DNA from: Oikopleura dioica
Lineage: Eukaryota; Animalia; Chordata
Assembly: GCA_907165135.1 (NCBI GenBank)
Contig: OU015568.1
Location: forward strand, 8,866,001-8,930,000
DNA length: 64,000 bases
Direction of reading: 5' to 3'
Positions 4,951 to 27,600 of the stretch are shown piece by piece. Under the pieces are notes generated by a model that was not told the origin of the DNA, did not search any database, and saw only the letters and a program-made list of their open reading frames with translations. Positions within the stretch are counted from its first letter, which is position 1; each line of letters opens with the position of its first letter. The position numbers and the translations under genes were made by a program.

Positions 4951-5098
4951 GAACCAAAAAGTAAAGATAAAAATTGCCATTCACAATTTCATATCCAAAA
5001 AATATGTTACTTTCCCTTTGCTTTATAAACTCCTAAACTAAAATACACCAAGCAAATGTTCAACATGAATTTTAGTCTATTAACTCCTTTTCTTTCAG

Positions 5099-5760
5099 AT
5101 GGGAGGACACAAGGTCTACCACTCCGAAGTCGACGATGGAGGAAACCAGTACAACTGGTTCCTGAAGGTTAAATAATTGTACTTTCTTTTGATCTAATTT
5201 TTGATTCAGGAATACAAACCTCCAACCCAGTGGCCAAACAGCATCGACACCACTCATCCCACTCACGACCGAACTCCCAAGGGCGGTTGGTTCCCCTATG
5301 GTGTCCCATTTGGTGCCGATATCTGGAAGATCTGGGGTACTGAAGGTCTTGTTAAGCGACCAGCGAAGGTTTCCCGGGCTCAGCGAGCCGAGGCCAAGCT
5401 TAACACTTACTGGGTAACTCGATAAGTTCTTGAATTCGCGCTCAAGTTCATTATTTAGCAAGCTCCACCAGATCACTGCCAGGAGTTTTACATGAACTTC
5501 CAGAAGTGCCTCCGCGACAAGCAGCAATACTACAACCACATTTTCGCCGATGTTCCAGGCAAAGGTGGCACCAAGTCCGGCGATTGCGGAATCTTCATGG
5601 CCCAGGTCAACGACTGCTGGCTCAACGAGCAAGTCGTTGGTGTTGCTCTCCACGAACGAGTCAAGTGAGTACAATTTGTTCAAGGCCGTGTTTTCACACG
5701 AAATTTAGGCGAATCCAAGATCATATGAATATCGATTATCTGCCGAAAGGATGGTTCTAG
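5099..5760 (+). CDS. Twin CX9C (CHCH-fold) mitochondrial intermembrane-space protein, possibly a complex I accessory subunit (NDUFS5/NDUFB7-like)
   Basis: TTTCAG|ATG at 5099; four exons with GT-AG introns; motifs CQEFYMNFQKC and CGIFMAQVNDC (both C-X9-C); N-terminal MGGH. Orthology not resolved. Confidence 0.6.
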
Positions 5761-5967
5761 GAAGCCTGTTACACTATCTGATATCTCTGTTCAATAATTT
5801 ATTTATTCTCGGCTTATAAATCTTAAGTTCCTACGAAAAAACGGCAGTGCCGAAAGATTCATTTTGATATTCCTAGTTGATATCAGAATTTATCAGTGTA
5901 TATTTTTCTGAATAATTTATTAAAATGATATTTTTTGTACAGGCCTTTATGAAAGCAGTATAAATAA

Positions 5968-7764
5968 TTATTTAAGAAGGGCTTTAGCATCTTCATCTTC
6001 GTCCTCGCGCTCCTTCTTTTCTAGGGTTGACTACATTTGACAAACCAATTGAATTAGTACAGTCAAAAAGTAGCGAGGTAATCTTGTAATGGAACTACTG
6101 GCAACCTTCCTTGAGCGATTCCCAGTATCGGAAAAGTGGTAATGAAGTTGTCCCGAGTAAAACAAAAATAACTGCGGCGATTTCCAATCCAGACGGGAGC
6201 GTTTTAATCACCAAATGTTCTAATGTTACCGAAACTGACCTCGTTGTCAAAATCAAATTCTTTGCATACAAATATGCTTCTTATGTCGAAGCTTTTTGCG
6301 AACGAATCCTATGATGTCAGTATTCTGTGCGACAGAAGCGAGTCCAGGGTTGATATACTGAATAATTTCTTAGTGTTTTTTCAGACTGCAAAGTTTTCAA
6401 GTTTTCGACCACAGTGGTGTTTAAATTATTACTGGGGCTGAGCTGGCCACTCGGTGTGTTTCCAAGTGCCCGGTGAAACTTTAAAAATTAAGGACAAACA
6501 CAGCTTACAATGTACCACTAACCTGTAGGGACCAATTGCTGCAGAAAGTAGCGATAGTCGCCGAACAACAAGCACCAACCAAGTAAACCCAGCCAGATGA
6601 GGTTTTCGGTAAACTGAAGCTTTCAAACTCGACTAAACTCGATTTTACTAAGAAATGCATTTAACTTGTCTTACGCATAATCGGAATGACGGCGATTACA
6701 GTCATCACAGAGTGCACAAGCACGATCGTGACTGGATCGATCTCGACTAAAATATTTATCGTTTTAAGACTTTTGGACCCTAAAACGAAGAAATAGGCAA
6801 TTAGTTCAGATCAGATGATTTGACAGCCTGGTTCTCAGAACGTTCTGCGAATACCTTTAATTTTCCGATACATCGTCATTCCAATACTTCTTGAAAGCCC
6901 AGCGACGGCGCAAAGACCGAAGCCTAGACCTGTGATGACATTTTGAGGAAGAGAAGATCTATGACAGTAATTGATTTTCAAAAGTCTGCCATATGATAAC
7001 TACCCATTATTGACATCCATGTTCCTAGTCATCGAATCGCCAGCGTAGAAAATCAATCCGATCGTACAGAAAACGACCTAACGATCATGCTCAATCATAA
7101 TGTCTCGTTGATTTATGTAATTGACTTACGGAGAATATCTCCAACTTGAGAATCTTTTCTTTCAAGCAAAAGAAAGAAAGCAAAATCGCAAAGAATGTCC
7201 GAGTGGAGCATCTTGTACCAAGCGCCGCTCCTGGGGCAATCATCGTGAAGGCTTGAAAACTTGCCATGGTCGCGACAATATAGCACAAGGCGATTGAGAA
7301 AACCCTTATTTGATATCCTGAAAAATGTTACCCAAGAGTTCATGAGCTAATTATAGGTGATTAATGATAGTGAACCTTCTGGCGGAACCATATGAACATT
7401 TTTGATTAATGCTGCCGGAAGAAATATTAACGACTTTTACCGGGGTCGACATCGCTTTTCATCTGTCAAAATAATTTATGATAATTGCAGCCACGAATTG
7501 ACATGTTTATGAAGAACACTATTAACCCCAGTCTGAAAGGCAGAGCGGAAAAATAGCGATTCCATAGCATTGATCGGTGGATCCTGAGCAGGCTCATAAT
7601 ATGCATGTTGGAATCACGGTAAGATAGATAAATTTATGAATCTGTTCCTGTTGAGCAAGTTGATTGACGAAAACAGACTGACAGCCGTACCCAACTCCAG
7701 CACCAAGTAACGCGATTGAAAGCCCTTTTGCAGTGGCGATCCATTTTGAGCGTTCAACCGTCAT
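5968..7764 (-). CDS. EamA/DMT-family transporter, SLC35G-like (multi-exon)
   Basis: Minus-strand exons: GLSIALLGAGVGYGCQSVFV, NAMESLFFRSAFQ, TFFAILLSFFCLKEKILKLEIF, GLGFGLCAVAG, WVYLVGACC..NWSLQ, NPGLASVAQNTDII, LPSGLEIAAVIFVLLG. The many hydrophobic helices follow SLC35G1 spacing. Confidence 0.75.
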
Positions 7765-8532
7765 TTCCCTCGATTTTTCGCGGTTGAAATCAAAAATCGC
7801 TGATCGTGATTGTTTAACTCAAATAGAGAAATCCAACTTACAGTTTGCAAGAAATCTATAATTCTCCCCGACCATGCATTTTTCGCCGATTGGGGACAGA
7901 ATCTCAGAATAATCTTCATCTTCTTTTAACGAGTTCAAACTCTACCTATTTCCATCCCTTCTTGATAAAATGCTTCAGATTCAGAGTTCATAAAGCGATG
8001 ACCATAAAATGCGCTTATTTTTAAATCAATCTTGATAAATGACAATTATGCTACGCGACAAAAAAGTACGAATTCTTAACAATGATTAATGAGGAATTTA
8101 TTCCCACAGTCAAATAATCATATTTTTTGGTCATCCCAAGTTCTGATACGAAACCGACATTTCCACAAATTCTCTATTTTCAAGTTCAGGTGAAAAATTC
8201 ATCGCCGTGTTTTTACTTTTCCTCGTTTGATCCCGGTCCTGAGCTCATGTCAATCATAATCGCGAAATCGTTTTCTCTCCCCAGAGAATATAAAATCCAA
8301 TCAACTCAAGTAAAGAAGGCTTTGTTTATAGAACTTCAAGGTTGCAGAAGTTTCACGTAGCTGCTTGATTTAAGCGCCTGCAGATATATTCTTCTGACTC
8401 AGACAAAGATCGCTTCAGGATAAAACCGAAACTATAGTGCTCACTCTAGCGGCGAGGTCTCCTCTTATTTAATATTTCACACCTAATAGGTGGACAATTT
8501 CCTTTCTTCTCCTGAAATATGCAGGCGGTACA

Positions 8533-9826
8533 TGATATCCTTAGGGAACAACGCCTCAAGCAACACAAAAAATTTATTTCACGGCCAAATATTTACGTCA
8601 ATTCGGTTCTACGTTAGTTTAAATTTGTCTTGTCAGCTTGGTATCACCAAATTGATCAGACATTTTTCCAAAAATCATTTCACGATATTCTTCTCAAAAT
8701 GAAAAGATGGTCAGTTTTTACGAGCCAGATTGACCCAAAATTGTGTTATCATCATGTCATCTCTTTACGATTTCTACTTTTATCATTGGAATGCTCATAT
8801 GCTCTCATCATAATCAACGGGTCGGAAATTAATTAAGGGTTTATTCAGTCTAGGATTAATGTGTATGTACGCATACTTTGGAAAAAATCTTAATTTGTTT
8901 CTGACTATTCTAGTGCGATCTGACGTCCATTCATCAAATATATGCAATTCGCAAAACCGCATGTTTAATCTATTTATTGATATTTCTTATCATTGCTTTG
9001 CGATTTTAAAAGTTCGATTATTGACAGTTCATACGATTCAACTTCTACAACAAGATAGCCGTCAACACCTTCTTCAACAACAACTACTCCAACGAGCCGA
9101 TAAACCGTCGTATCATCTCGGTGCCGTGGGGTCGGACAAACTCTCTGTCAGTGCGTCCGCTTGTCGCAAACTAGCTCATCCGTAAGAGAAGATACGGTGC
9201 GAACCGCGACAGTAACTTCCCCCCGGGTATGTTCCTTGGAATTTGCTTCTTCTATGATTTCAATTTTGATAAATTTATTTTATAAAATCCTGACCAAATT
9301 TTATTCAATTTATTTGTTAAAATTTTGTACATATTCTTTTTCTTTTCTCATCCTTTTTTATATTTCAATCCTAATTAACAGTCACTTCTACGGTCACATA
9401 GTGAGAAGTTTTAGTGGCTGTTATTATTTTCTGCTTTTTATTATCAAAAAAATTAATTTGCGTTTTATCTCGTCACGCGCGGCGCCGGCTTCAAAATCCT
9501 TTGAAAATAACTTGCTTGGCAAGTTCGACCAGCTCATCATCCGAAAAGAAATCGATCCGAAAGGATTTCCCGCAAGAAAAACCGCTAAAGAAAGCCACGG
9601 GCTCTCTTCCTTGTTTTCAAAAGAAAAATTGTTTTTCAAAAACAACCGCTTGTTCAAAAACACTGATTGAATCTCGCTGCTATTTAACCCCGCGTCGCGC
9701 CTTTTTCCGGCATTCAAATCACAAATAAAACCACGCAAATTTTAAATTTGATTCTCGTTATTTTCGCTTGGCATTCTAGAGTTAGAGATCGAGCAAAATT
9801 CCTGCAGGACAGCCGCTTCCGTATCA
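8533..9826 (+). repeat. 5' LTR (1294 bp)
   Basis: Direct repeat of 15439-16732. By eye the copies differ only by two 1-nt homopolymer indels (C6/C5 near 9220, A7/A8 near 9450). AATAAA near 9724. Confidence 0.97.
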
Positions 9827-10935
9827 TGGTGACTCCAACTCCTGAAGAGGTACTGTACAAGAGTCATGCGCTTTTTTCGGTTTCCCCAAATCAGATGATA
9901 AGATTAGGAATGAGAAATTTTGAATTTAATTTGATTAACTCTTCAATCAAAGACAAATTACAGCGAGCAAAATGGATTTTTGAGAAATCTCTCGCCGAAA
10001 ACAAACCCGAAAACAAAGAGGACCTCGAGGCTCAATTTTCGCGCCTGTCAAGTTCTTTTGTTTATAATTCATGCGAGCCAGAATTTCTTAGGGAATACGG
10101 GGAAGATCTTTACGGATTTGAATCAGCTGAGGAAAAATTGTCATTTTTGACGTCTGTTTTTGGCGACGAATCGCCTGAGGAAAAAATCCTTCGGAACAAA
10201 GAAAAAATGGAAAATCTCGCTCGTAAGAGCGAGAATAATGAAAAGTTCGAGATTTTTTTGTCACGTGTAAAAACGGTTGCGGAGAAAATAACGCAGAAAC
10301 CGGACGCGAGAGAATACATTATCGACGCGCAATTTAGAAAATCGCTCACGCCCGAACTGCAGAATTTTCTTCGCGATCAGTGTATGCTTGAAAAAACCCC
10401 CGAGGAAATTTCCAAATTTCTTGACAAAAGAAAACGAAATGAGACTATCCCCAAAATTGCCCAAATCGAAATTGACGCGAAACTTGGCTCGTTCTTCCAG
10501 TCGACTTCTGACTTAATTTCGAAATCGACAATGTCCTTCGAAGATCAAATTGCTCAATTGAAAATTGAACAGAAAAAATCAGAAGAGGCGGCGGAAAAAC
10601 GGGCATGTGCGCTTCATGATCAAATCGAAAAGCTAACGGCGACAATTGCAAAATTGGAAGTTGATCGCCGCAACGATCAGAGTTTGACGCGTCAAAATGA
10701 CCAGCAACGGAATTTTCAAAGTCGAAATTTGGGCGCGCCAAACTCAGATCGGCCAAGGCCTCGACGATTTTGTGGATTTTGTAACACAGACACTCATTTC
10801 AGATCGCATTGCCCCTTTATAACCTGTCATTTTTGTCAGAAAAAAGGCCACATGAAAACGGCTTGTCCCGATAATCCCGACAGAATTTACAGAGCTGCTC
10901 GGGTCGAGGGAGAAGAAACTTCAAAAAACGAGTAA
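9826..10935 (+). CDS. gag: Retrotransposon Gag with two CCHC zinc knuckles
   Basis: ORF with CGFCNTDTHFRSHC and CHFCQKKGHMKTAC (CX2CX4HX4C). The first ATG, at 9826, straddles the LTR/PBS junction. Confidence 0.92.
   Translation: MVTPTPEEVLYKSHALFSVSPNQMIRLGMRNFEFNLINSSIKDKLQRAKWIFEKSLAENKPENKEDLEAQFSRLSSSFVYNSCEPEFLREYGEDLYGFESAEEKLSFLTSVFGDESPEEKILRNKEKMENLARKSENNEKFEIFLSRVKTVAEKITQKPDAREYIIDAQFRKSLTPELQNFLRDQCMLEKTPEEISKFLDKRKRNETIPKIAQIEIDAKLGSFFQSTSDLISKSTMSFEDQIAQLKIEQKKSEEAAEKRACALHDQIEKLTATIAKLEVDRRNDQSLTRQNDQQRNFQSRNLGAPNSDRPRPRRFCGFCNTDTHFRSHCPFITCHFCQKKGHMKTACPDNPDRIYRAARVEGEETSKNE
9827..9839 (+). promoter_or_regulatory. Primer-binding site, probably tRNA-Trp
   Basis: TGGTGACTCCAAC abuts the LTR end and matches the usual eukaryotic tRNA-Trp PBS TGGTGACCCCGAC at 11/13 positions (one difference is a G-U wobble). 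Confidence 0.7.
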
Positions 10936-10969
10936 ACGGAACTGAAAGCCCTGGTCAGGCACCAGTTCC
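10923..10969 (+). promoter_or_regulatory. -1 programmed ribosomal frameshift signal
   Basis: A_AAA_AAC heptamer in the gag frame (10923-10929), 8-nt spacer, then stem GGAACTG/CAGTTCC (10938-10969) with an inner GCCCTG/CAGGC stem. pol is in the -1 frame and open from 10875. Confidence 0.85.
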
Positions 10970-13900
10970 AAGGACTTGTTCAATTTTTCGCATTGGATTA
11001 CAATATTTTGTAGAAATGACAATTTTTTCAAAGAAAATAAAAATGCTCGTCGATTCAGGTTCCCAACTTAATCTTTTGCCCAAATCATTTATTCCCGATA
11101 ATGTTAAAATTCATGCCCCTGATATTTTTGCTAAAAATTATGGTGGAGGAAGTATTGAAATTCTTGGTTATGTTGAATGTGATTTTTATGTTAAAACGGA
11201 AAAATGGGGTAAATCGCGATTTTACATTGTAAATGACAATTGTGAGGCAATTCTCGGTTCGGAAGCACTCAAATCGAATGAAATAATGATCAATCTTCAT
11301 CGTAATCGTCTATTAAAATCTGGTCCCATCGAGCGAATGGCGAGTTTATGTAATAATTCATCAAAAAGCCCAAAAGTTAATAACATTGAGCATGACAGTT
11401 TTTATGCCGTTTCTGATCAAAATTACACATTTAGAGGCAAAAGTGAGCAAATAATCGATTTGAGGATTCCTCATTTAAAAAGATCAATGAACCTTTTTTT
11501 AGAAAAAAGCCAGCTCAAAAATTCGAAGCTCGAATTAATAGAATCATTTCAGAGAGTTGATCCCGAGAATCCATTTTTTCGTATTCTTGTAATAAATCCC
11601 TTGAATTCTACAGTTAAAATTCCTGCTGGCACGGCCTTTGCACAACTGGCGGAAATAGCTGAGATCGCAAGCATAAAGTCCTCAAAAAAAGATCTGAATT
11701 TTCTTCTTTCGCGCTTGAAAATAGGCGATCTATCGAAAAGCAATCAGCCAGTATTTTTTGGTCTTCTTGGTATGTACACCCATTTATTTCAAGATGAGGA
11801 CGATGATTTGCCTGTCTCGAACCTTGAAAAATTTTCGATTGAATTGGAAACTGATCGCCCAATTTGTAGCAACATGTACAGAACGCCATACGCCTTGCGG
11901 GGAGTAATGTCCGGTACTCTTTCCTCCTACCTTCGGCAAGACATGATAATGCGAATTAATTCACCATATAATAGCCCTGCGTTACTCGTAAGAAAAAGAA
12001 ATGGAACATTCAGATTATGTATTGATTACAGAAAATTAAATTCATTTACGCTTCAGCAGCATCATCCGTTGCAACAAATTGAGGACGTTTTAGGGTTTTT
12101 AGAAAATAGCCTTATTTTTTCTTGTGTGGATTTGCGCAAAGGGTTTCATCAGTGCCTCGTGGATAAGGAATCGCGAGAGAAACTAGCTTTTTCGACTGAA
12201 GACGGACAATTCACTTGGAAAAGACTTCCAATGGGTCTTAAAAATGCCCCTATTCATTTCGCAAAATGCATGGATGTTATTTTACGAGACACGCCAAAAA
12301 CTGAAATTTGCGCATATCTTGACGATTTAGTTGTCCATTCAAGAACAGAAGAAGAACACCTAGCCAATTTAACTAAATTTTTTCAAATTTTAGATCAAAA
12401 TAATCTGCGAATAAATATTGATAAAGCGAGTTTCTTTGAGCGTAAAGCATGCATTTTGGGTTTTGAAATTTTCAACGGGAGAATACGGCCATCACAGGAC
12501 AAAATCGAAGCGGTTAAAAATCTTTCTATTCCAAGAAACCGTGAGGAGGCACAATCACTTTTTGGACTTCTTTCGCAGCACAGAAAATTTATTAAAAATT
12601 TCGCACCCCTCGGAGTGGAAATTTCAAAAACGTACAGAGGTTCATTTTGTTGGACAAAAGAGGCAACGATTTCACTTGAAAAGCTCAAAAGTATCATCTG
12701 TCATAACACTCTTGAGCTTAAAATTCCCCCACTAAATGACGGAGTTTTTGTACTTGAGACTGACGCATCAAATCATAGTCTCGGTGGAGTTCTTTATCTT
12801 TGCGCGGAGCGAAATAAAAATCACCATCATTCGCATAAGTGCCTGCAACCGATAGCTTACCACTCGCTTAATTTTACGCCGGCACAACAGAAATACGGGA
12901 CATTGGAAAAAGAGCTTTATAGTGGGAAAACATGTATGGAACGATGGAGGGCTTATCTTGCTTATGTCGATTTTCTTTGGATCACTGATAATTCTTGTGT
13001 AAAATACGCTCAATCCTTCAAGACAAGTAATTTAAAAATTCAGAGATGGTTTACGGAGCTTCAAGGCTTTTCGTTTCGAATTGAACAAAGAAAGACTCAT
13101 CAAATGAAAATCAGTGATTGCCTTAGTCGTAATACTTTAAATTGTTCAATCAATCAAATAAAATTTACCCCTGAATCATTTGTAGAGTTTCAAAAATCTG
13201 ACCGAGTATTATCACAAGTTAGACGTTTTGTAAGTATTGATAGATGGCCAAATAACCCACCAAGTGAGCTTTACCCATTCTTTTTACGTAGACCTGACCT
13301 TGAAATCCTTGAATCCGGGGAACTAGCTATAAATTCTCCAGCGAATCAAAAAAGATTTTGCGTCCCCGAGGCATTGACCGAAACAATTTGCAGCGAATAT
13401 CATGATCACTCTCATTTTGGAATCGATATAACAGCCGAAAAAATTTCTAGGAAGTATTTTTGGCCGGGATTAAAAAATACGGTCGCGAGCTTTATAAGAT
13501 CATGTCACAAATGTCAAATTTCAAAACCAAATCTACAGCCTAACAAACCTCCTCTAGGTAAATCTGAAACACCAAGCGGCCCTTTTGAAATTTTGTACTT
13601 CGATTTAATCGGTCCACTTCAAGAAACTGATTTTGGTCATAAATATGTTATGGTGGTTATTGACGGTTTTAGCAAGAAAGTTTATGCGGAGCCCTTATCT
13701 TCTAAAAAATCGGACTATTTACTGCAAAAATTCCGGAGCGTTTTATTTAGAAATCCAAAATTTCCAAAATATATGGTTTTAGATAACGCCAAAGAACACG
13801 TTCTGATTGAGAAATTTTTGAAAGAAAATAAAATTGGGGTGCATTATATTCCCCCGCGTCATCCCCAATCTAACGGGCAAGTTGAAAACGTCAATAGAAC

Positions 13901-15389
13901 AATAAAAGCCAGGCTCAGGGCTCGTTCAAACTGGGTGAATTGGGATATTTTTCTATTTGAAATTGTTCACGAAATAAACAGTAGTTTACATACAGTACTC
14001 GGAACAACCCCATTTTGTGTAGAAACTGGTGTAAATAGCAGTCATCATTTTCAAGACCCTTATTGGCGTACATATGGAGATAAAATCGACGTCAACTTTG
14101 GGGAAATTCGTGCAAAAATTGAACAAGAAAAGCAAAAAAGAATGATCAAATTTGATAATCCCCGTTTCAAAGAATATGATTTAGGCGATAAAGTTCTTAT
14201 CAAAAATTTCCGCGAAAAATTTCCCCCGTTTTTAGGTCCTTATGAAGTAACGTTTAAATCCCCGAGTGGTCTCTGGTACACTGTTAAAAATGATAAGGAC
14301 GAATTTAGGCGACATGCAGAGCATATAAAAATTTATTCTCAGCGAAATTCAATTTTAGAGACGAATAATGATGTTGAAAAATACCCCAAGACTGTGATTA
14401 AACCACAAGAAAATGATCTCGAGCTTTTTGAAATTTTTTCTGAAAACTGTCTTTTTTCGAAGGATTCCCTTGGTCGGTTTGATGAAGATTTCTCTACAGA
14501 AAAAGAATCGGAAAAAGCGCATGAACCTTTATCCTCTGAAATGTCAGATCAGTCATTACAATCGGAATCTTATCGGGAGCGGTCTAGTTCTTCTTCAGAA
14601 CAAGAAAATTTTTCATCCTCATCGACTCTTTTGATAGAAATGCCATTACCGAAAATTTATCGTAATCAAGAACCTGATTTGAATCAAGTAGGAAATGGAT
14701 CAAATATTGTGCTTGATTCCGAGAAATCAAGTTCTGATTCTGAGCTTTCTGTTAATTTGACATCGTATGATAAATTGCCCGAAATTGATCCGCTAGTTGC
14801 TCTTAAACGTAGAAGGGAAAAATCTGATGATTCCGTTGTCGAGCGTAAAATTGCAAAATTTACAGTCGAAAATAATTTGGAAAACATGTCAATTCTAATT
14901 AAAATGGAAAATCATGATCTTGACTTTTTTGAACATCTAAATGATAAATGGAAAAATACAGACGACATAGAGGAGACTTATGTTGAAAATGGTATATTTA
15001 TCAAACTAAACGAATTAACAAGAGACTCACTTTTATTCATTCTTTTTAAAATGAATCAGGACTTTGATCTCGAGGAATCAAGGGCGAAACTTCAGATAAA
15101 AGTGAAGGAAACTATTCGTAGAGAATATCCGAATTGGCGTAAATCGAGAAACGGACAACTTCTTTTTTTTGCGGTCTTTAGAGTGCAAAAAGAGCGAACG
15201 TTGTACGAACTTACTGTCCCCGAGCTAAAGACTGTTTGCGCTTTTTATGATTTACCCTGTAAATTTCATAACTGTTCAAAGACAATCTTACAGGCATCTA
15301 TCGAAACAGAATTGCTGAAAAAATTTCCAAATCATCCGATGCGTAAAAATGTTCTTGTTTTTCTTCCAGACTTTGAAACTGAAATATGA
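10929..15389 (+). CDS. pol: Retrotransposon Pol (protease, RT, RNase H, integrase, long C-terminal tail)
   Basis: LVDSGS (protease); LCIDYRKLN, DLRKGFHQ, LPMGLKNAP, YLDD (RT); LETDAS..LEKEL..TDNS (RNase H); HDHSH..CHKC, DLIGPL..DNA..NGQVENVNR (integrase); GPY motif. No stops. Confidence 0.97.
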   Translation, partial: RVNGTESPGQAPVPRTCSIFRIGLQYFVEMTIFSKKIKMLVDSGSQLNLLPKSFIPDNVKIHAPDIFAKNYGGGSIEILGYVECDFYVKTEKWGKSRFYIVNDNCEAILGSEALKSNEIMINLHRNRLLKSGPIERMASLCNNSSKSPKVNNIEHDSFYAVSDQNYTFRGKSEQIIDLRIPHLKRSMNLFLEKSQLKNSKLELIESFQRVDPENPFFRILVINPLNSTVKIPAGTAFAQLAEIAEIASIKSSKKDLNFLLSRLKIGDLSKSNQPVFFGLLGMYTHLFQDEDDDLPVSNLEKFSIELETDRPICSNMYRTPYALRGVMSGTLSSYLRQDMIMRINSPYNSPALLVRKRNGTFRLCIDYRKLNSFTLQQHHPLQQIEDVLGFLENSLIFSCVDLRKGFHQCLVDKESREKLAFSTEDGQFTWKRLPMGLKNAPIHFAKCMDVILRDTPKTEICAYLDDLVVHSRTEEEHLANLTKFFQILDQNNLRINIDKASFFERKACILGFEIFNGRIRPSQDKIEAVKNLSIPRNREEAQSLFGLLSQHRKFIKNFAPLGVEISKTYRGSFCWTKEATISLEKLKSIICHNTLELKIPPLNDGVFVLETDASNHSLGGVLYLCAERNKNHHHSHKCLQPIAYHSLNFTPAQQKYGTLEKELYSGKTCMERWRAYLAYVDFLWITDNSCVKYAQSFKTSNLKIQRWFTELQGFSFRIEQRKTHQMKISDCLSRNTLNCSINQIKFTPESFVEFQKSDRVLSQVRRFVSIDRWPNNPPSELYPFFLRRPDLEILESGELAINSPANQKRFCVPEALTETICSEYHDHSHFGIDITAEKISRKYFWPGLKNTVASFIRSCHKCQISKPNLQPNKPPLGKSETPSGPFEILYFDLIGPLQETDFGHKYVMVVIDGFSKKVYAEPLSSKKSDYLLQKFRSVLFRNPKFPKYMVLDNAKEHVLIEKFLKENKIGVHYIPPRHPQSNGQVENVNRTIKARLRARSNWVNWDIFLFEIVHEINSSLHTVLGTTPFCVETGVNSSHHFQDPYWRTYGDKIDVNFGEIRAKIEQEKQKRMIKFDNPRFKEYDLGDKVLIKNFREKFPPFLGPYEVTFKSPSGLWYTVKNDKDEFRRHAEHIKIYSQRNSILETNNDVEKYPKTVIKPQENDLELFEIFSENCLFSKDSLGRFDEDFSTEKESEKAHEPLSSEMSDQSLQSESYRERSSSSSEQENFSSSSTLLIEMPLPKIYRNQEPDLNQVGNGSNIVLDSEKSSSDSELSVNLTSYDKLPEIDPLVALKRRREKSDDSVVERKIAKFTVENNLENMSILIKMENHDLDFFEHLNDKWKNTDDIEETYVENGIFIKLNELTRDSLLFILFKMNQDFDLEESRAKLQIKVKETIRREYPNWRKSRNGQLLFFAVFRVQKERTLYELTVPELKTVCAFYDLPCKFHNCSKTILQASIETELLKKFPNHPMRKNVLVFLPDFETEI

Positions 15390-16732: not shown

Positions 16733-16833
16733 GTACACGACAACGTGGTTGATAGTTACCACAAGGAACACTTTATTATTCATTTTCAAATCAAATTTAT
16801 TTAAGTTCAAAAACTGTCTACAAAAGAATAAGA

Positions 16834-18039
16834 TTATGAATCAATAACATGCACAACAGCAGGCATTTCTAATAGCTCGCAGCCATCATTACTAAATCCC
16901 CAGTGGAATCCAATTTTCGCTCGTTGTATATCTTCAGCTTCAGTTTGGACAAGAACAAAGTGTTTTTCGCTCATTCCAGATCCGTCTGAGCGGCGTTTTC
17001 GAAGGAGAGATCCGTCACCGTTTGTTGTTCCGGTAAAGTCGGCGTACCAAAAGTTGGGAACGGCATCGTCACTGCATTCGCCAAAGAAGACGACGTGGAT
17101 TTCTCGTCGTGTTGTTCCTCCTTGTGCTGGTTGAAGGATGATGTTTCCAGTCATTTGATTAGTTCGAATCTCTGCGTCACCAGTTCCGTGGTTGTTTCCA
17201 CCGCCTCCAGTGCTTGTTTCTTCTGTTGTGGTCGTCGTAGGGGCGTCAGTTGGTCCACTGCCATCACAGCCTACAGTTGATCCATTTTCTCCAGTCGATG
17301 TGCCAGAAGCATCGCAAATGGCCCGAGTATCAGTTTGGCCTCGCCCGAGAATGATGCTATCTCTAGCAGCTTTGTCGGCTACAATTTCGACTTCGAAACA
17401 AGTAGAGTAGTAATCAGTTGCGTGGTTGAAAGCCCAAACCCAGGAGAAAGTGTAGCTTCCAACTGGATAATCTTCTGGGATGTTGAAAGAGTAAGTTCCA
17501 AGAGATTTATCTGTATCTTCGCAAAAAGCAGGAGCGTTGGCGTAACCCACTTTTGGATAAGCTTCGGTGTCGACTCCATTGCCAGTTGGCGACTTTCCGA
17601 GGTTGGCGACTTCGTTTTGTTTGAAAACGCTCAAGACCTGGTCAGCTTGACCGGGGTTGGTTTGAGCAGTTGCGTAGATCCAGTTTCCGTTGTCGGGAAT
17701 GTAGGGGTTCGTGCACGGTCCTGTTCCGTGGTTTTTCATCGGATGAGCGAGGATGACTTGCTGGCCTTGGTAGTAGACCGTCGAGTGGTGGCCGCTCTGG
17801 TAGTTGTTGTTGTTTCGGGAAGACTTGCAAGGAGACGATCCCGAATTGGGCCGATGGTCGAATCCTCGGTCTCCACCGAAAGTCTGCCCGATTGGAGCAT
17901 ACTGATGAGCATCTCGAGGCCACGCTCGGCAAAGATCGTGGTCGTAGTATCTTGCGTTCTTCTCCAAATAATCGGTGCAAGCGATCCAGGAATGGGCAGA
18001 AACGCCGGCGGATAAAGCGGAGAGGGTAAAAAGTTTCAT
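16834..18039 (-). CDS. Intronless secreted protein, 401 aa, with predicted mature His1 (LPMO/histidine-brace-like N-domain), Thr/Gly linker and unknown C-domain
   Basis: Signal peptide MKLFTLSALSAGVSA then HSWIAC; HPMKNH; GSYTFSWVWAFN..YYSTCFEVEI; PTTTTTEE linker; RKRR site. The ORF is certain; the function is inferred. Confidence 0.7.
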   Translation of the reverse strand: MKLFTLSALSAGVSAHSWIACTDYLEKNARYYDHDLCRAWPRDAHQYAPIGQTFGGDRGFDHRPNSGSSPCKSSRNNNNYQSGHHSTVYYQGQQVILAHPMKNHGTGPCTNPYIPDNGNWIYATAQTNPGQADQVLSVFKQNEVANLGKSPTGNGVDTEAYPKVGYANAPAFCEDTDKSLGTYSFNIPEDYPVGSYTFSWVWAFNHATDYYSTCFEVEIVADKAARDSIILGRGQTDTRAICDASGTSTGENGSTVGCDGSGPTDAPTTTTTEETSTGGGGNNHGTGDAEIRTNQMTGNIILQPAQGGTTRREIHVVFFGECSDDAVPNFWYADFTGTTNGDGSLLRKRRSDGSGMSEKHFVLVQTEAEDIQRAKIGFHWGFSNDGCELLEMPAVVHVIDS

Positions 18040-18081
18040 TTCTTGGTTATTTTTTTCTGGTTCTGAACTTGTGCCCTCGAC

Positions 18082-18155
18082 TTTTATAATCAGATCGTAA
18101 AAGTAAATACGCCACCGAGATGAGCAAATTAAGCGTCAATGAGATGAGCGTCAAT
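18082..18155 (-). promoter_or_regulatory. Putative TATA promoter of the His1 gene, with two ATTGACGC repeats
   Basis: TATAAAA (minus strand) at 18082-18088, 43 nt upstream of the ATG. GCGTCAAT repeated at 18133-18140 and 18148-18155. Confidence 0.45.
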
Positions 18156-18690: not shown

Positions 18691-21600
18691 TTAGCTCAGT
18701 TTTGTAGCAGGGCCAGTTGGGAAGAGTTTTTCAGTGATCATTCTTGCGTTCAGAATCGTATCAATCTCGGCCAGTGGCTGATCTTCGGAGCCCATTTGGA
18801 TCTTGAAGGTTGCCGACCAAAGACCATCTTCTGTAAGTGGGCTGACAGAAAGCAGCGTCATTCCTGGAATGGAGGATTCTTGAGTCGGCCCTTGATACGG
18901 TCGCCCAACGTTTTCAAGCCGATTGATTATTATCTTCTTCTTGAGAGCAGCTTCGAACGAAATTTGAACGACAACTTCATTTCCTGTAGCTTCGAAAGCG
19001 ACAGGGATGTCAATCTGGATCGGATTGAAGGACTTTTTCTTAGATTTCTTTGGTGACTTTGCTTTTGATTTGCCTTCGTACCTAAATAATTAATGCTTGG
19101 CAAGTTGTTTTTTAATAAAGTCTTACATTTGGACATGAGCCTGGAGCAATTTCAAAACTGATGGCGTTTTGGGAGCGGGAGTTGTTCGCTGTTGACTTTT
19201 TGTTGTAGTCGTTGTAGAAGTTGTTGAGATGACATCTGTTGTATCATTGAGAACAGCAATTTTTTCGAGGAATAAGTCTGATATTTCTAGGCCAGCGTAT
19301 TGCGTAATAAATTCAACCTCGTATTCAATCATCCGTCTAATATCATCATCTGGTGCATTTTCCATCACATTAACATCGAAAGTCACGTGTACTCGAATAG
19401 TTCGTTCATCAACAGGAATCAAATCTGTGATCTGATAAAGTGAAATCTGCCCTGTTAAACTTTGTAGCGCGTCCCAGACTAGGCCCATCACTTCATCAAA
19501 ATCCATTATGTCGTCAGAGGAAAGAAGATCGATTTGAACTTGAGCTTCTAGTGTTGTCATTTTGTTTTCATCGGGAGAAGACTGAGTTATTCCTCCTTGA
19601 TATCGAGCATCTAGACCTTTTACTGATGGATAGGTTGAAAGAGCGCTGCGGAAATAAGATCGTAGAGTAGCGATCGGAAGAGCTTCAGACGACTTTGTAG
19701 TAATCACGATTGAATAAGAGTATTTGTCGAAGTTGCCTTCTTCAAGAATCAGTAGTCGAGCAATGTCACTGTACTCCAATTCTATGACTTCGACGAGCCC
19801 ATCGAGAATTCGCCAGACTTCTCCTTCTTCCACAATATCGGATTCAAGATATTGGTAAAGGATGTCTAGAATGATGAAATGTCTAGTAATGGTTTGCTCC
19901 GGCGTTGTCGTGGTAGTAATCGTTGATGTAGTTGTTGTTGATGTTGTCGTTGTTGATGTCGTCGTCGTTGATGTTGATGATGTCGTTGATGTCATAACCG
20001 CTGTTGTTGACGAAATGATTCGGGTAAAAACACTTTTCTGTGGAGTAGTTGTTGATGTCATCGACGGCGTTGTAGTCCTCATTTCTCTTGGATCATAGAA
20101 TCCTCGTTTTGGCAAAACGTTGTTAACCTTTTCCAAGGTAATGATATCCGGACCGATAAGTTCTAATGAAAAGGAATCTTCGACAATGTAGAATGCAGAA
20201 GTCTGTTGATTGAGCATTTCACAACCAGATTGAAGAAGAGCTGTCAGCATCGAGTTATCGAAGTGATTCGAGTTCCAGTGATCTTCATTGAATAGAACCA
20301 TGAACAGAACGTTGACCTCGAAACCGGAGCTGAAGTCTTCCTGCGCTTTTGGCCTGGTGTTCGTCGCCAATATGGTCGCGAGATTATTGTAAAAAGCACG
20401 GAGCTGATCCGCCAAGACGCTTGAAAGCGCCCGAATGTCTGATCGGAAGTCCTTTGTTTCGATATAGAGATGCTCCAGCTTTAATCGTAAATAAACCATG
20501 TCGCTTTTATCCTCAAGTTTGATCATGTCTGATTTCAACATAGATTGAGTCGTGATTGTCGAAAGTGTTGTTGCCGTAGAACCTGTCGTTGTCTGTATAT
20601 CGAAGTCGACCGAAACTGTATCTGACCACGCAGAAACTCCCATAAGCTCAAGCCCAGGTAGAATATCATAGATTGATTTGGCGATGTTTCCGATGAGGTT
20701 TTCGGGTAACTGTCCGAGTGATTGACGTACAGTCACTTCATAATCGATTCCATCGTTGTAGTCGAGGGTAACGACGGGATTAGGTAAGATATTCATAAAA
20801 TGCTTTCTGATGTTTTCTTGGGCTAAAAGCTCATCGATAGAGAGAGAAGCGATGAATTTAATCTCGAGTGGAGAATCTCCTTCGAACTCTCTGAAAGATG
20901 AAGTTGTTGTCGATGCCATTGTAGTAGAAGTGGTTGTCGTTGCGTCTGAAGGGCATTTGACTGCGTAAGAATCAAGAAGCTTCATGGAAGACGCAACCTT
21001 GCCAAAGTTCATTTCTGAGCAGTCACTGATGAATAAACAGGCGTCACTTACCGCTTGTGACATTAAAAATTTATAGTTTCAGAACAGTAATGCCGTCATT
21101 TAGTACACACTGAGTTGTCTATAATATTAATGAACTTGTTCCTGAATAAAATCGTGGGCTTTGTGCGATGTAAATCGGACAATCTCTCCTTTTATTGCCT
21201 TCTTGAACAATTTTACGTCAAATTCACTGTCCAAAGTCATCTCGAAACCGATAGATGTGGCAAATAACTTTATGTCTCCTCGTTTCTTTTCTGTCTGTTC
21301 TTCAAGACTGTAATAAACTTGAGCTTCAGTCACACCATCTGTATTCTCCAAAATTGACTTTTGAATTTTCTCCTGGAAGGTATCCATTACGCTCACTGGA
21401 TTGTGTCTGGCATCGATTTCAATGAGGAGTCCAAATTCAAGCATACCAAGATAGCACTCGGTCGATTTCGTCGTAGTTGTTGTTGTCGTTGTTGTTGTGG
21501 TAATATTCGCCTCGTATTTACCGAAAATAGCACCGAGTTTATCGAACATATCTGTTGTTGTTGAAGTTGTTGTGGTCGTTGTTGTGGTCGTAGTCGTTGT

Positions 21601-24600
21601 TGTAGTCGTTGTAGTTGTAGTCGTTGTAGTTGTGGTTGTAGTAGTTGTGGTAGTGGTGGTGGTCGTGGTGGTTGTTGTGGTAGTAGTGGTTGTTGGAATA
21701 TTAGCGTTGAAGAAAATTTGGAATGGTGTATCGTAATTTCGCGTAAGCACAACTTGCATTACCACATTATTTCCAAAGAAAGTTCTCTTCAAGCCGTTTC
21801 TCAAATCGTACGGGCAAATTTGCATTTGCCCGCGCTCATCACTGACGAGAACGTGGTCGTTACAATCACGCGTTTCCATTTCGACAGCGATAAATTCCAC
21901 GTGATAGCTCTCAGCCAAATAGTTGCTGAGAATATAACGATTCAAAGCCGCTTCATTCAAGAAGCCTTCGATGACTCCTGAGGTTTCTTCAAGCTTGACA
22001 TCGATGAGAGGCCAGCATCGTTTTCCATCGCCAACATATCCGCGAGGACATTCGCAAATGAAATCGTCGAGGCGTGAGTGGCACTTCATATCTTCCAAAG
22101 TATCTGGCATGCATTTGTTGCTCTTACACTGATCTTTGTAAGATTTGTAGATGAGCTTGAATCCTGAACCGCGACGCTGTGCCTTAGTAGGGTCGACAAA
22201 AAGACGAATCACGATTTCAGAAACTTCGAAGAGATTGATGCGCTCGGAAATCTCCGCATGAGAGGCTCCGTAGCTCGTTTCTCGTCGACGTCGGTAGTAT
22301 TGACTTCTTGTGCTACCCTTGCAGCTGTCAATTCTGATCGCTTCGTCGGGTGCAGAAGCATCAAAGATCTCAACGTAGTCATCACATCCGTCGACAATGT
22401 CATCAAGATCGAGCGTTTCGATTTCGAATTGATAAGAAACTGCATCAGGGACTTGAACGCGCCATTCTGTCGGTGCCGAGAGAGAATTTCCATAAGCAAA
22501 TGGAAAACCGACATTGGAAATTTCACCTTCCTCATCAACAAGAGTAACGGGAGCGGAAATGTCTGGAAGAACGGGACCAAAGCCAAAGTCTCCAAGAATG
22601 CAGTGATCGTCGACTTCTCTCATTCCTGGCAGACACGAGCATCCAAAAGTACCGATATCATTTCTGCACTCAGAGAAAAGAGAACAAGTTAGTTCTTGAG
22701 AAGACTTCTGCAAAAGTTTCAAAGCCTTGAATTTGCTTTCGTCAATATTTTCATTACCCAAGAAAGTATTGAGTGTTTCGACCTCGATAAATTCAATTTC
22801 GTCGTCGCCAGATCCACCGCCGGAGCTTTCCTCGATCGTTATAGTCGGAATTCTTACCGCCATATTTGTCTCTTGAGAGATGCATTTTAGCAGACAACTC
22901 ATATCGTTACTATTGCACATGGTTCCACAAAACATTAAGCTTGGTAGAATAACATCTTTATCGACATCGATCATTTCATCGGGACTGTATCGGATTCGGG
23001 AAAGAACGCATTTAACGGGACAAACTGTGTCAGATTTCTTGCATTGACCATCGCATAAATCAATCGCCATATGGAAAAGAAGATCGTAGTGCAGATCAAG
23101 TTGTCTGTTGAAGCATTTGTTAACGCAATCAACATTGTCACAGCCCAAACTGCAGTCGTACATTGATGTCAGTAAAATTGACGGGATACTTTGCCTGCTC
23201 GGGCTTGTCAATATGCACTCGGCCATACAACTTGAACCAGACGTAGTCGAGTGCTGACACGAGTTGAAACAAGTCATCAATTTTTGAACTGTGTCTCCGA
23301 GTACTTCTGAGCTTTCTGGTGAAATATTAAGGACGATACCAGCGTTTATATTTTTCAGGAGACAGCCAACAAAGCAACGGCCATCCGCAGAACCAAAGCT
23401 ACAGTCAGCAAGGCATATTTCCATGACTGTATCTCCCGCTGGAGTAGGCAGAGCTAGAGAGCGAAGACAAACTGCCGCTTCTCCAGGATGCTCAGCTTCA
23501 GAGCAGCCTATCATTTGCAACGGGGTGTAAAGCATATTCATTCCAGTGGTCAAATAGTCAATAAAACACTCAGCAGCGTTATCAGCTTTCTTTTGCTGGC
23601 ACTTTTCTGCAGCTTCGTAAATTCTTGCAAAGCTGTCGCTCTCGATCAAGCCAAAAACGCAGCGATATTGACAAAGTATTGGCTCGTGGAACACGTGACA
23701 TTCATCCGCACAGGCGACGATGTATGATGTCGGGCTTTGATCAACGCAGAACATGACACAGGAAAGACCATCTTCTTCTGCCTTGCATTCTTCGAAGCAA
23801 TGGACAAGGGTTGAGACAACATGTTCTTGTGCTAGCGATCGGATTTCTGGCTCTGGAACGAGGCATCGAACAACGCAATTAGCATCAGATGTTGCGCATA
23901 TTTCTGAACAGTCCATAAGCATCGCCACTGAAGACTCTTCGATAAGTGGCTCAGATTTAGCTTGGAAGCAAAGAGTAAAGCATAAAGCTCCGTTATTTGT
24001 GTCCTGGCAGGCAGCTGAACAGCTCCAAATCCAAGAGGCAAGTTGACGTACTTCTACAAAAATATTGAGACCTGAAACATTTCCTAATTCGTACCTGGTG
24101 CAAGAGTCTCACTGAGACACTCCACGGAACACTCTGCTTCGTTATTAGCGCCACTACATTTATTCCAGCATCTCATTGCCATCTGTGTCTTCTTCTTCTC
24201 GTCATCTTCTTTAGTGATAACTGCGGATAGTGCCGAAACAGCGCCGCAAGTTTCGAACTTTACATTTGGATTTTCCAACATGCAGGTAGCCATGAATTCC
24301 CGTTGTTCGGATGCAAGTTCTGCTGGATATTTGAGTTCTTTCGTTACACAAGTATCGTAGCAAGCAAGAGAATCATCAATATTTTCGATATATCTAAAAT
24401 ATCATTTTATAAATTCTAATATAAAAAAGACTAACCGGCAGTTCGAAATACACAACGGCAACTGCATGATCAGCTGATCGTTAAATGAAGTAATATCGTA
24501 ATCCATTGTGATACACTTCAAAAGACACCTCGTCTCGTTTTCCGCGCCTGCACAAAAGACTCTGCAATCATTGAGCTTTTCTCCGACAGACACAATTTGT

Positions 24601-27600
24601 TCAGAAGAAGCGCTCTTCAAATTGGTTCCTGAGCCAGCGATAATTTGTCTGAGATCATCGTCCGTAGCGTTGAAGATCATTCCATTGAGGGCAAAGTCGT
24701 AGAAATCTGGGTAAGCATAGAAAATCGAGTAGAATTTTTGCAGATCGTCATCTTCCTCAGCAATTTTGCATTCATCGACATCCATGCACCCGTGACCTTC
24801 ATTGACAGATTTGAAGCCATCTTTGCACTCGCACACGAAGTCGCCATCGACGTTATTGCAATTTCCACCGACGCCGCATGGTTGAAGAAGCGCACACAAG
24901 TCTGGCGCAGAAGTAGCTAAAAGAGGACTGTTCTCGTCTATGATTGCATCATAGAAAAGTCGGAAGCCGCTTCCTCGAACGCTCAGGTGCGAGTTTTGAT
25001 TGAATTCCAATCTGATTTTATTCGCCTTCAAAACGACAGGTTCCTTTGTCATCATCATCCTTAGCACTTTCGGATCACATGATCGCATCGAATAAAGTTC
25101 TGCGTTTGACTCGTCGTCCCAAAAAATCAGCGAGTCTGAACACTCTGAATCAAGCTCAAGTTCCATAACAGTGATTTCATATCCTTTCGCCGCAGGAACT
25201 CTGATAAACCATTTTGATTCTGAAGATGTTGAACTCTGTGAATCGATGAAACCGTTTCGTTGGGTTCCAACAAATGGCAAGCGCTTTTTCGGCATGAGTT
25301 TTTGGATCTCTGGGGCTTTGGTCATTTGCGGATCCAAAAATGGAAGGGATGCAGCCGTTGTTGCTGGAGCAGGAGTGGTTATGATAGCTGGCGCATTTGT
25401 GGTTGTGATAAACTCGCACGTTTGGTCAATTATCTTAGGAACACATAGGCCATTTTCACAGCCTACAGAATTTGGGCCGCAATAAGAGCAGCTTGGACCC
25501 TGAAAGAACGGAGCTTCTCGCTTCCTTTCTTGAGTTCTGTACTGGCAAATAATCATTCTTCCTTTCTCGAATGTTTGTTCTCCGTCAAAAAGGTTTTCGC
25601 ATTCTGCCATGCCACAACCAACTTCAGTACTTTCCCAGAACGCTATGTTTCTATAAGGTCGGCAATCTCCTGAGCATGATTGTTTCACGGGATCATAGAA
25701 GCGCTCGGTAGTGTACCAATCGTAAACCACGTGGTCCCAGTCGACAAGTTCAGTGTTATGTTCCACAGCTGCAATACTCTCGCCATAATTGAAGTCGATG
25801 ATTTTCTTCGCCAGAGCTACGAAATTAAATTTATATTCCTTTTATTTCTCTAACCTTTGACTGAATTTTTGTATTCGCACTGTTTGGCAAAGAATCTAGC
25901 ATTATCTGCAAGCTCATTTGACCAAGTCATTTGGAAAACATTTGCGCCGCCTAGTTGTCGTCTGTACGCATTGTGAAGCTTGACAATGTCGACTTTTTCC
26001 TCGAATGTCAAATCTCGCATCGTCGTCTTTTGAAACTGCTGGTCGATGCACATGTCCAGTTTCACCTCGTCGGATTGAATCAATTCAACCTAAATCAGCT
26101 CTCGTTTGATTTATAAATATAAAATAGTACCTCAGAACGAATAGGAGCACCGTAAGCCTCGACTTCGCATAATGCTAGAGAAGTAGCACTTTCAGGAATC
26201 GTGACGATGACCCACGTGGAAACCATTTTTGTTTCACATACAAATTCAACCCATTGTCCAGTTTTCCCGGTAAGGCCGGTCTGAAATGATTAAATTTATG
26301 ATAGACGTTTTTAAACATACCATTTCCGCGCAAAGAGCCGATTTATGAACATCTTTTGTCGTACTTAGTCTGACTTGCAGCCTATTGTAGCTGATTTTAT
26401 CCGGCAAAAGAATTCGAACAGTATTCACTTCAGTCAATTTCCCGAGATTAGCAGCAAGAGAGGGCTCAGTAGTGATTCGGCTCATCGCGCAACAGGTGCT
26501 CCTTTCCGCAGTTGCTTTCAAACAATCAGTTTCTCCATCAGCAACCAGACTTCCTGGAGCAAAATCATACGCAGAATCGAGGTGGATTTCGCTCTTCTGG
26601 TTCAATAGATTTCTATGTTTTTCACAAATTCCTCGGTTGCACCAGTCTGCTTGAGTCCATTCTCCGTGACATTCAAATCCGCCAGAGCATTTTCTCTCTC
26701 GAGTTCTTTTTCCAAAGTGGCAGTCATTCTTGCACTCGTTCCACTCTGACCAATTCATCCACTGCGCAAGAGAGCTTCCGTAAACGCCAATTTCGCATAA
26801 ATCGAGCTGTGTTTCAATCCCGAAAACGCGAATTTTCACAGTGTCGCCAAGTAAAAACTCGTCACAGAGTATGAGATTCTCACCAACATCAGTAAATTTA
26901 CAGAGTTTATCATTTATATAAACTTCTAGTGATGGAATTAGCTTTTTGGAAGAAAGCTTTATTGAGTGGATTTCAAATTTCTGCGCCAACTTGATCTCAA
27001 CAAAAGGCTCGTAAGTGTATGATGTGCTAAAGCAACTGAAATAATGGATGAATTATTGCACTTCAATAAAAAATTCATACGACAAACGATTCATCCTTTC
27101 CTTGTAGCAAAGCCATCGGTCAAAAGCGACGTAGATTCTCCGGAAAAGTCGACCGTGCTGAGTCCCGATGCATAGGCTTACCGGACTAAATTTCGACCCA
27201 TATTTCTAGCTTAGTTGGGTGGTCATATGACACAGTTTTAGAAAGCCTAGCTTCTGGGCTTTCATGTGGGTACAAATTCAAGGGGTCTGGGTCATGCCCG
27301 CAAGGCAATTCATGGGACCTGAAGTCCCAAAATAGGTACTAGAATCCTTCAAACTATTTTTTCAATACCCGTCCGGGCTCGAGAGTAGTCGAGAGTCATA
27401 TATTTAGAAAGCTCAGGCTCTGAACTTTCAGTAGAGATCAAGAAATCTTAGTGCCAAGCTGTTTGTGGCCAACTGGAGGCGCTAGAAGTTAGCGGTGAAA
27501 ATCCGGAAATGCCGGAAAATTCGGTTTTTGAGTTCTAAACTCTACAATTATATGTATAAAACATATATAAACAATAATTAATGCATTAAAAAGTTGAACC

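Follow-up and report, generated by a model that had tools for sequence, protein, structure and literature searches.

Recent papers group the lytic polysaccharide monooxygenases (LPMOs) into families AA9-AA11 and AA13-AA18, and new families have each altered the understanding of polysaccharide turnover. AA18, the bacterial CelOCE (Santos et al. 2025), is unrelated to the protein studied here. Structures of the fungal family AA11 have been solved for AoAA11 (4mah/4mai), AfAA11A (7p3u) and AfAA11B (9exj/9hdg); in AfAA11B His1 and His61 form the histidine brace, Glu139 is a second-sphere residue and Tyr141 is the axial ligand. An LPMO active-site motif, N/Q/E-x-F/Y, has been published (PMC5320794) and does not include Asp. 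AA15 comprises animal-encoded secreted LPMOs, such as that of Thermobia domestica (5msz), and is found in tunicates, oomycetes and algae as well, with fusions to the carbohydrate-binding module (CBM) CBM1. Tunicates are, to our knowledge, the only animals that make cellulose, and so far only CesA and a GH6 whose phenotypes are weak have been candidates for shaping, loosening or recycling it in its crystalline form. Here we explore a gene of Oikopleura dioica, a tunicate of the larvacean group, located at 16834..18039 on the minus strand of a 64,000-nucleotide stretch of contig OU015568.1 (assembly GCA_907165135.1, positions 8,866,001 to 8,930,000; hereafter the window, in whose numbering all positions are given). 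According to its sequence and structural models, and with about even chances in our judgement, it encodes a secreted two-domain protein whose N-terminal domain is an LPMO-type copper enzyme of an unnamed family, acting most probably on cellulose.

Predicted fold and putative copper site

The open reading frame is complete, with an ATG start and 401 codons plus stop, precisely as in a preliminary description made from the DNA letters alone. Its orthologue in the O. dioica reference is CBY24786.1 / E4XK10. The features that bear on the N-terminal domain (N-domain) are:

17995..18039, minus strand: signal peptide, residues 1-15 (MKLFTLSALSAGVSA), with predicted cleavage after Ala15 (V at -3, A at -1)
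17374..17994, minus strand: catalytic-type domain with predicted LPMO fold, residues 16-222, with six conserved Cys (21, 37, 71, 109, 173 and 214), an AlphaFold2 model and a match to Pfam DUF7492
17992..17994, minus strand: His16, the predicted mature His1, proposed to bind copper by its side chain as well as its amino terminus; invariant in all complete N-domains (85/85)
17728..17730, minus strand: His104 of the P-x-K-N-H motif, the proposed second brace histidine; likewise invariant in 85/85
17407..17415, minus strand: Asp209-Tyr210-Tyr211, a [DEQN]-x-[YF] motif in which Tyr211 is the proposed axial ligand and Asp209 occupies the position of the second-sphere Glu/Gln

A histidine brace requires that the mature protein starts with His, and the preliminary description had accordingly placed the end of the signal peptide at VSA. 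The leader MKLFTLSALSAGVSA is indeed followed directly by HSWIACTDY and its predicted cleavage site agrees with the -3/-1 rule. Of the 111 relatives whose N-terminus is complete and to which this rule was applied, 106 have A, S or G at -1 and 109 have V, A, T, I, S, G or C at -3. Relatives with an N-terminus show a hydrophobic leader of 10-33 residues, variable in both length and sequence, followed by HSW[ILVM]. The pattern is that of a classical signal peptidase substrate and predicts His16 as mature residue 1. The conservation of this residue, on which the brace proposal depended, was checked in the 85 complete N-domains and proved to be without exception. The protein further contains ten Cys, in even pairs, and its C-terminus (...AVVHVIDS) lacks a hydrophobic tail, both of which fit a soluble secreted protein.

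An AlphaFold2 model of residues 16-222 was built on 24 sequences and has a mean predicted local distance difference test (pLDDT) of 88 and a predicted template modelling score of 0.88. The modelled domain contains the stretch GSYTFSWVWAFNHATDYYSTCFEVEI and ends, as described beforehand, with GSYTFSWVWAFN..YYSTCFEVEI. Foldseek against the PDB returned mostly AA10, AA9 and AA11 LPMOs; upon re-alignment of these matches by VIA the 50 top entries were all LPMOs (Z 8.5-11; AA10, AA9, AA11, AA13 and AA15). The first residue of the model aligns with the first residue of the matched chain; for proteins crystallised in their mature form this is the N-terminal His. In an exhaustive structural comparison with 48,161 representative PDB chains, ranks 1-24 were all taken by LPMO or LPMO-like proteins (Z 10.5-7.2), with best scores of 10.5 for AA10, 9.8 for AA15, 9.6 for both AA11 and AA13, 8.9 for AA9, 8.4 for X325, 7.8 for AA14 and 7.2 for AA16; the first unrelated fold followed at Z 6.3. 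By shape none of the LPMO families stands out as the closest. The N-domain is hence predicted to have the LPMO fold, with its immunoglobulin/fibronectin-like beta-sandwich core, the kind of fold that the structure check proposed with the preliminary description was to look for.

The residues expected around a copper ion are conserved accordingly. Beside the two histidines, position 211 holds Tyr in 78 of the 85 complete N-domains and Phe in the other 7; at position 209 there are 55 D, 14 E, 5 Q, 2 N and 3 A, such that 76/85 have D, E, Q or N. Trp200, Trp202, Phe204, Asn205 and the six Cys are invariant or nearly so. By sequence, the published LPMO motif N/Q/E-x-F/Y appears to be present here, with Asp as the commonest variant at its first position. 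HMMER alignments, with positions counted by hand, place His104 on the second His (His60 of AoAA11, 4mah, or His61 of AfAA11B), Cys109 on Cys65 of AoAA11, Tyr211 on Tyr140 of AoAA11 or Tyr141 of AfAA11B, and Asp209 on Glu139 of AfAA11B. The HPMKNH segment had been put forward with both of its histidines as possible ligands: both exist, and His104 is retained as the proposed brace residue, whereas His99 is ruled out since most non-animal relatives have Trp or Tyr there.

Family assignment, relatives and gene history

The preliminary description held that this is an LPMO-like histidine-brace protein distinct from AA15 and of no family that could be named. The first part agrees with the predicted fold, with the conserved His1, His104 and Tyr211, and with the lack of any match to PF03067 (AA10/AA15/AA16) at E-values up to 10. 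The second part is correct as far as the AA families are concerned, yet Pfam has a family, DUF7492 (PF24320), that the protein matches with 31.6 bits (E 1.3e-7) at a gathering cut-off of 27, the best stretch being profile positions 190-243 of 265. For several close relatives the score stays under this cut-off, and most relatives are below threshold or have no match. Relatives do align collinearly with DUF7492 at the K-N-H motif (profile positions ~57-116) and at the C-terminal motif (~184-245), but only part of the 265-position profile aligns with the family of the window protein. The nearest clusters in the ESM Atlas are DUF7492 too (score 0.92), a family commonest in Ascomycota; our comparisons were made with the non-fungal members. 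The Pfam scan of the window protein gave no match to DUF6595 (X325), an NCBIfam scan gave no family, and PDB sequence searches with the protein retrieved no AA15 or AA10 chains. The literature searched for DUF7492, PF24320, the O. dioica or Ciona accessions, and LPMO combined with tunicate names yielded no paper on this protein or its family, and the DUF7492 entry has neither a function nor a structure attached to it.

AA11 proteins are the only solved structures that were found by sequence profile (E 1e-3 to 2e-2), and they have the highest identity in structural alignments (16-19%, Z 9.2-9.6). They share the motif G-x-Y-T-[FL]-x-W-x-W-(x)-F-N ... [DE]-x-Y-x-x-C with the window family, whose invariant Asn205 falls on an AA11 Asn. 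Of the AA11 second sphere, Tyr-Glu-Asn, the Tyr and Asn205 are conserved, whereas the Glu position is Asp here and in 55/85. The likeness in sequence is, however, limited to the last ~40 residues, which align well, and a weak match near the second His; a search with the single sequence gave E 0.048. In the alignments the N-terminus HSW[ILV]xC.DY finds no counterpart in AA11, 88 residues of the domain precede the second His as compared to ~60 in AA11, and the appended modules are CBM1, GH45 or a tunicate domain. AA11 is fungal, whereas the window family occurs in animals, oomycetes, algae and protists. AA15 is comparable in that it is encoded by animals and secreted and matches structurally (Z 9.8), but there is no hit at sequence level, and the HSW start differs from the HG-type start that the preliminary description cites for AA15. 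X325/Bim1 has an LPMO-type fold and a histidine brace whose copper has an acidic residue nearby; it nevertheless constitutes a separate Pfam family that is anchored by glycosylphosphatidylinositol (GPI) and free of CBMs, while the window protein is presumably soluble and has relatives with CBM1 and GH45. Since PF03067 and DUF6595 are not matched and the AA11 likeness does not extend over the catalytic domain, we treat the protein as representing a family of the LPMO fold that is still unclassified, is related to DUF7492 and has AA11 as its nearest by sequence.

Two further candidates were discarded. We take Voshol's 'LPMO14' to be what later became AA16; it is a family of fungi and Phytophthora with a helical C-domain, and the AA16 structure matches the window protein only at Z 7.2. 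The LPMO orthogroup that the Didemnum genome paper reports for all tunicates is worded in a way that fits PF03067, so that it is probably AA15 and not the window family.

A word-indexed search with the whole protein yielded 39 proteins and a profile search with the mature N-domain 137, amounting to ~140 relatives overall. Full-length two-domain relatives are found in Ciona, Styela (at least five paralogues), Clavelina and Phallusia, and the family is present in all sampled tunicates. Roughly twelve contigs of mRNA size from marine metatranscriptomes cluster with Oikopleura and presumably represent other larvaceans. Only the N-domain is found in the bryozoan Watersipora, the ochrophyte alga Phaeothamnion, the oomycetes Albugo, Pythium and Aphanomyces and many transcripts of marine eukaryotes, as well as in amphioxus, there as one truncated model. 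At least 12 relatives, all protist members, carry CBM1 (confirmed by scan for P0072 and P0146). One protein, P0039 (649 aa, from a JGI metagenome contig of 2025 nt), consists of the N-domain, CBM1, a GH45 endoglucanase and a second CBM1, thus uniting putative oxidative and hydrolytic cellulase domains in a single chain.

A maximum likelihood tree was built from the 85 complete N-domains; its root was not inferred and most of its rows lack a taxon label. Tunicates are recovered as a single clade (support by the Shimodaira-Hasegawa-like approximate likelihood ratio test, SH-aLRT, 98), within which larvaceans make up a sub-clade (99); the tunicates have the bryozoan group as their sister, and the animal clade (98) sits among oomycete and other protist rows. 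Such a tree fits either ancient inheritance followed by loss or transfer from a protist as the origin of the animal gene. The gene is nonetheless a long-resident animal gene and not a contaminant, because in Ciona the orthologue, on an 18-Mb chromosome record (AP043567.1; L002:4001-6406), comprises five exons or more. Contamination or recent transfer of the tunicate genes is rejected on these introns, on the location of the genes on multi-megabase chromosomes and on synteny of an EamA-family gene between the O. dioica lineages.

Some members show peculiarities of their own. Both O. dioica lineages have a single exon as compared to the five or more of Ciona, hence intron loss has been complete in Oikopleura. 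Five Styela clava proteins (P0020, P0023, P0027, P0030 and P0053) are encoded on one 24.3-Mb record with neighbouring LOC numbers, which suggests a tandem cluster, and some Styela models (289-310 aa) lack the C-terminal domain. In amphioxus P0070 (Branchiostoma hybrid assembly, 228 aa), ~26 residues are duplicated internally, with VPRTAQFG.HDTYSYFPS.GAV present twice, and the model ends ahead of the W-x-W / Y-x-x-C motif; this copy may be decaying or wrongly assembled.

The intronless nature of the gene, also part of the preliminary description, is corroborated by the reference O. dioica gene, which is a single uninterrupted 1206-nt open reading frame, and by the reads, in which no splice joint was seen. 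An apparent joint in the reads (17829>17906) was not accepted as an intron: the 76 nt it leaves out are not divisible by three, GT-AG is lacking on the minus strand, and the joint occurs only in reads of another lineage that are less than 90% alike, where it corresponds to a divergent stretch left unaligned. The window protein is 86% identical to CBY24786.1 / E4XK10, collinear and without gaps, whereas nucleotide identity to the Norwegian reference is only 75%. Because of this low value we assign the window, by sequence, to a cryptic lineage of O. dioica separate from the reference.

This divergence also allows selection to be assessed. Synonymous sites are saturated between the two lineages (proportion of differing synonymous sites, pS, 0.74-0.84), while the corresponding nonsynonymous proportion (pN) is 0.067 for the N-domain, 0.060 for the C-domain and 0.28 for the linker that joins them. 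Strong purifying selection thus acts on the two domains, but not on the linker.

The gene is transcribed and polyadenylated. Marine metatranscriptome contigs are 95-99% identical to it, and one of them ends in a poly(A) run at 16772, which defines the following feature:

16772..16833, minus strand: 3' untranslated region, with AATAAA at 16801-16796 and the poly(A) site near 16772, 24-29 nt downstream of the signal

In poly(A)-selected RNA sequencing data from one study of O. dioica, two libraries have 328 and 105 reads in the region 16826-18103. All reads on the coding sequence are less than 95% alike and nearly all less than 90%, hence they stem from the orthologue of another O. dioica lineage.

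Substrate and role

In the mechanism that we propose, signal peptidase would cut after Ala15 and thereby free the amino group of His16, which together with its imidazole and that of His104 would hold one copper ion in a histidine brace, with Tyr211 below the copper and Asp209 in the second sphere. Reduced copper with O2 or H2O2 would then oxidise and break glycosidic bonds on the surface of a crystalline beta-1,4 polysaccharide. Cellulose is the most probable substrate, since CBM1 and a GH45 cellulase are found fused to the domain in protist relatives, and it is also indicated by the occurrence of the family in cellulose-walled oomycetes and algae and in the cellulose-making tunicates. The cell walls of oomycetes and of the ochrophyte alga contain cellulose. 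Cellulose is favoured over chitin only indirectly, by the CBM1 and GH45 fusions of relatives. In tunicates a lineage-specific beta-sandwich takes the place of the CBM and would probably target the enzyme to the matrix of tunic or house, or to food particles. As physiological role we infer either remodelling of the animal's own cellulose or digestion of algal walls.

Several observations weigh against a cellulose-active copper enzyme. Most members have Asp in the second sphere rather than the Glu or Gln of proven LPMOs, and the Glu-to-Asp mutant of AfAA11B is a poorer peroxygenase. Histidine braces without catalysis exist in fungal X325/Bim1, in bacterial CopC and perhaps in AA16. AA11, the nearest family by sequence, is active on chitin; the CBM1 fusions are confined to protist members, none being found in animal proteins; and the bryozoan and amphioxus have the domain but make no cellulose, such that a digestive or chitin-directed role fits equally well. 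A third poly(A) library of the O. dioica study has no reads on the gene, which, with reads in two of the three libraries, hints at expression restricted to a stage, sex or tissue. Lastly, the comparison with the house proteome that the preliminary description called for was made against the 80 oikosins published from pre-house rudiments (Hosp et al. 2012), and it turned out negative: the protein fits none of the 80 and its accessions are absent from the supplements. Among the oikosins of Table S4 none combines ~43 kDa with a near-full-length Ciona hit, which is a weak negative given that a low-abundance enzyme could be missed. As no oikosin fits, the protein is not an abundant structural component of the house.

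The preliminary description had envisaged remodelling of the larvacean house. A part in reshaping cellulose remains within the scope of our proposal, but the family is not specific to larvaceans. Since ascidians have intron-bearing two-domain orthologues and the catalytic domain occurs in bryozoan, amphioxus and protist lineages, a role in the house alone is unlikely to be the whole story.

The alternative that survives best concerns the role rather than the mechanism, and we regard it as possible though rather unlikely: the enzyme would be secreted into the gut and open cellulose- or chitin-walled phytoplankton, instead of remodelling tunic or house. Among animals the domain occurs in tunicates, amphioxus and a bryozoan, all of them marine suspension feeders. 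This role would agree with an animal clade nested among protist sequences, with the absence from the house proteome table and with the abundance of AA15 LPMOs in the gut proteome of a cellulose-digesting insect. It does not account for the restriction of the two-domain form, with its extra beta-sandwich, to the tunicates as cellulose makers, nor for the expansion of tunicate genes, as seen in the Styela paralogues.

We consider it unlikely that the same copper enzyme acts on chitin instead, be it in the gut lining or mucus of tunicates and amphioxus, in the bryozoan cuticle, or in food such as diatoms, fungi and crustacean debris. Apart from the chitin activity of AA11, such a substrate would explain why animals that make no cellulose have the domain; AA15, for which activity on cellulose as well as chitin is known, has chitin as its substrate during cuticle turnover (PMC9156745), and the weak structural matches of the C-domain include chitin-binding as well as cellulose-binding domains. 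Among the relatives found, however, none has the chitin-specific CBM14 or CBM18, while CBM1 is present at least 12 times and GH45 once, and many non-animal members come from the cellulose-walled lineages named above.

A non-catalytic histidine-brace protein for copper capture, transport, buffering or redox signalling, like X325/Bim1 or CopC and with Asp209 or another carboxylate filling a fourth coordination site, is the least probable: papers do describe LPMO-like proteins with a full brace yet no activity on polysaccharides, X325 is among the structural matches (Z 8.4) and has an Asp carboxylate as extra copper ligand, and the position two before the axial Tyr is most often Asp, but X325 (DUF6595) is another family without sequence match to the window protein, which has no C-terminal signal for a GPI anchor, position 209 is also Glu (14) or Gln (5) as in true LPMOs, and fusions to CBM1 and GH45 make sense only for a polysaccharide-directed function.

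An LPMO-type enzyme acting on cellulose would resemble the horizontally acquired CesA and GH6 of tunicates in its pan-tunicate conservation, extracellular location and probable direction at cellulose. It would differ in that it acts oxidatively, and in that CesA and GH6 are of bacterial origin and membrane-bound, whereas the nearest non-animal kin of the window gene are eukaryotic protists. Its sequence and predicted fold have all the hallmarks of an LPMO, and with its wide eukaryotic range and its fusions to cellulose-binding and cellulase domains it is a possible new LPMO family. Only tentatively do we suggest that it is the founding animal member of a new CAZy-level 'HSW' family, through which tunicates, using a targeting domain of their own, would oxidatively cut and remodel the crystalline cellulose of tunic, larval fin and house. 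If so, it would be a copper-based counterpart to the hydrolytic GH6 that is under study in tunicates. As a conserved, secreted, putative oxidative enzyme it is a direct candidate for tunicate cellulose turnover. Discarded larvacean houses export carbon to the deep sea, and an enzyme that cuts house cellulose would bear on this flux. A digestive or chitin-directed enzyme would still represent a second animal LPMO lineage, independent of AA15.

C-terminal domain, linker and neighbouring genes

Beyond the N-domain, the protein consists of:

17266..17373, minus strand: conserved post-domain segment, residues 223-258, with Arg226 and the Cys242-Cys258 pair; present in tunicate members
17179..17265, minus strand: linker rich in Thr, Gly and Pro, residues 259-287, variable in length and sequence, with alignment gaps (pN 0.28)
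16837..17178, minus strand: C-terminal beta-sandwich domain (C-domain), residues 288-401 (~114 residues), in tunicate members only; AlphaFold2 pLDDT 84
16990..17001, minus strand: RKRR, residues 347-350, a dibasic motif of the proprotein convertase type between Cys322 and Cys387

The Thr/Gly linker and the second domain with its RKRR site were thus both recognised correctly from the sequence at the outset. The linker is probably O-glycosylated. Gly298, Leu302, Cys322, Phe330, Trp331 and Cys387 are invariant in the C-domain. Its single loop of low confidence (pLDDT below 50 at residues 347-351, C-domain positions 60-64) holds the RKRR, and R-x-[KR]-R is present in the same loop in 10 of the 26 two-domain relatives checked, Ciona among them. 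A furin-type convertase would probably cleave there in these ~40% of the two-domain members, the window protein included; in that case the flanking Cys322 and Cys387 could hold the pieces together.

No Pfam family was found in the C-domain of any of 23 members, and Foldseek of the domain against the PDB gave nothing below E 0.3. An exhaustive comparison by VIA reached a best Z of 5.7, with top rows rich in CBM2, CBM3 and chitin-binding domains (ChBD) that are all within noise, and a shape search in the ESM Atlas was uninformative. When a word search was confined to residues 285-401, it turned up no other architecture with this domain, which constitutes a weak negative. That the C-domain is a carbohydrate-binding module, as the preliminary description suggested, would at this stage be a guess from its modelled shape.

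Neither of the adjoining elements, a matrix gene and a retroelement, informs the function of the LPMO-like gene. Immediately upstream, on its 5' side, the long open reading frames of a giant secreted matrix protein extend over 19123-34563 (minus strand), with fn3, TSP1, SEA, EGF and discoidin-like domains and long Thr-rich tracts. The 3' neighbour is a Ty3/gypsy-type retroelement at 9161-15389 (plus strand) with RVT_1, RNase H and integrase zinc finger and core domains. It lies ~1.4 kb past the poly(A) site, between the LPMO-like gene and its EamA-family neighbour. On the reference O. dioica scaffold there is no such element at this locus and the EamA-family gene directly follows, hence the insertion is specific to the window lineage. 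Beyond the retroelement, at 3367-8532, genes for an EamA-family transporter and a Plus-3 domain protein have the same order and orientation as in the reference, at 70-76% nucleotide identity.

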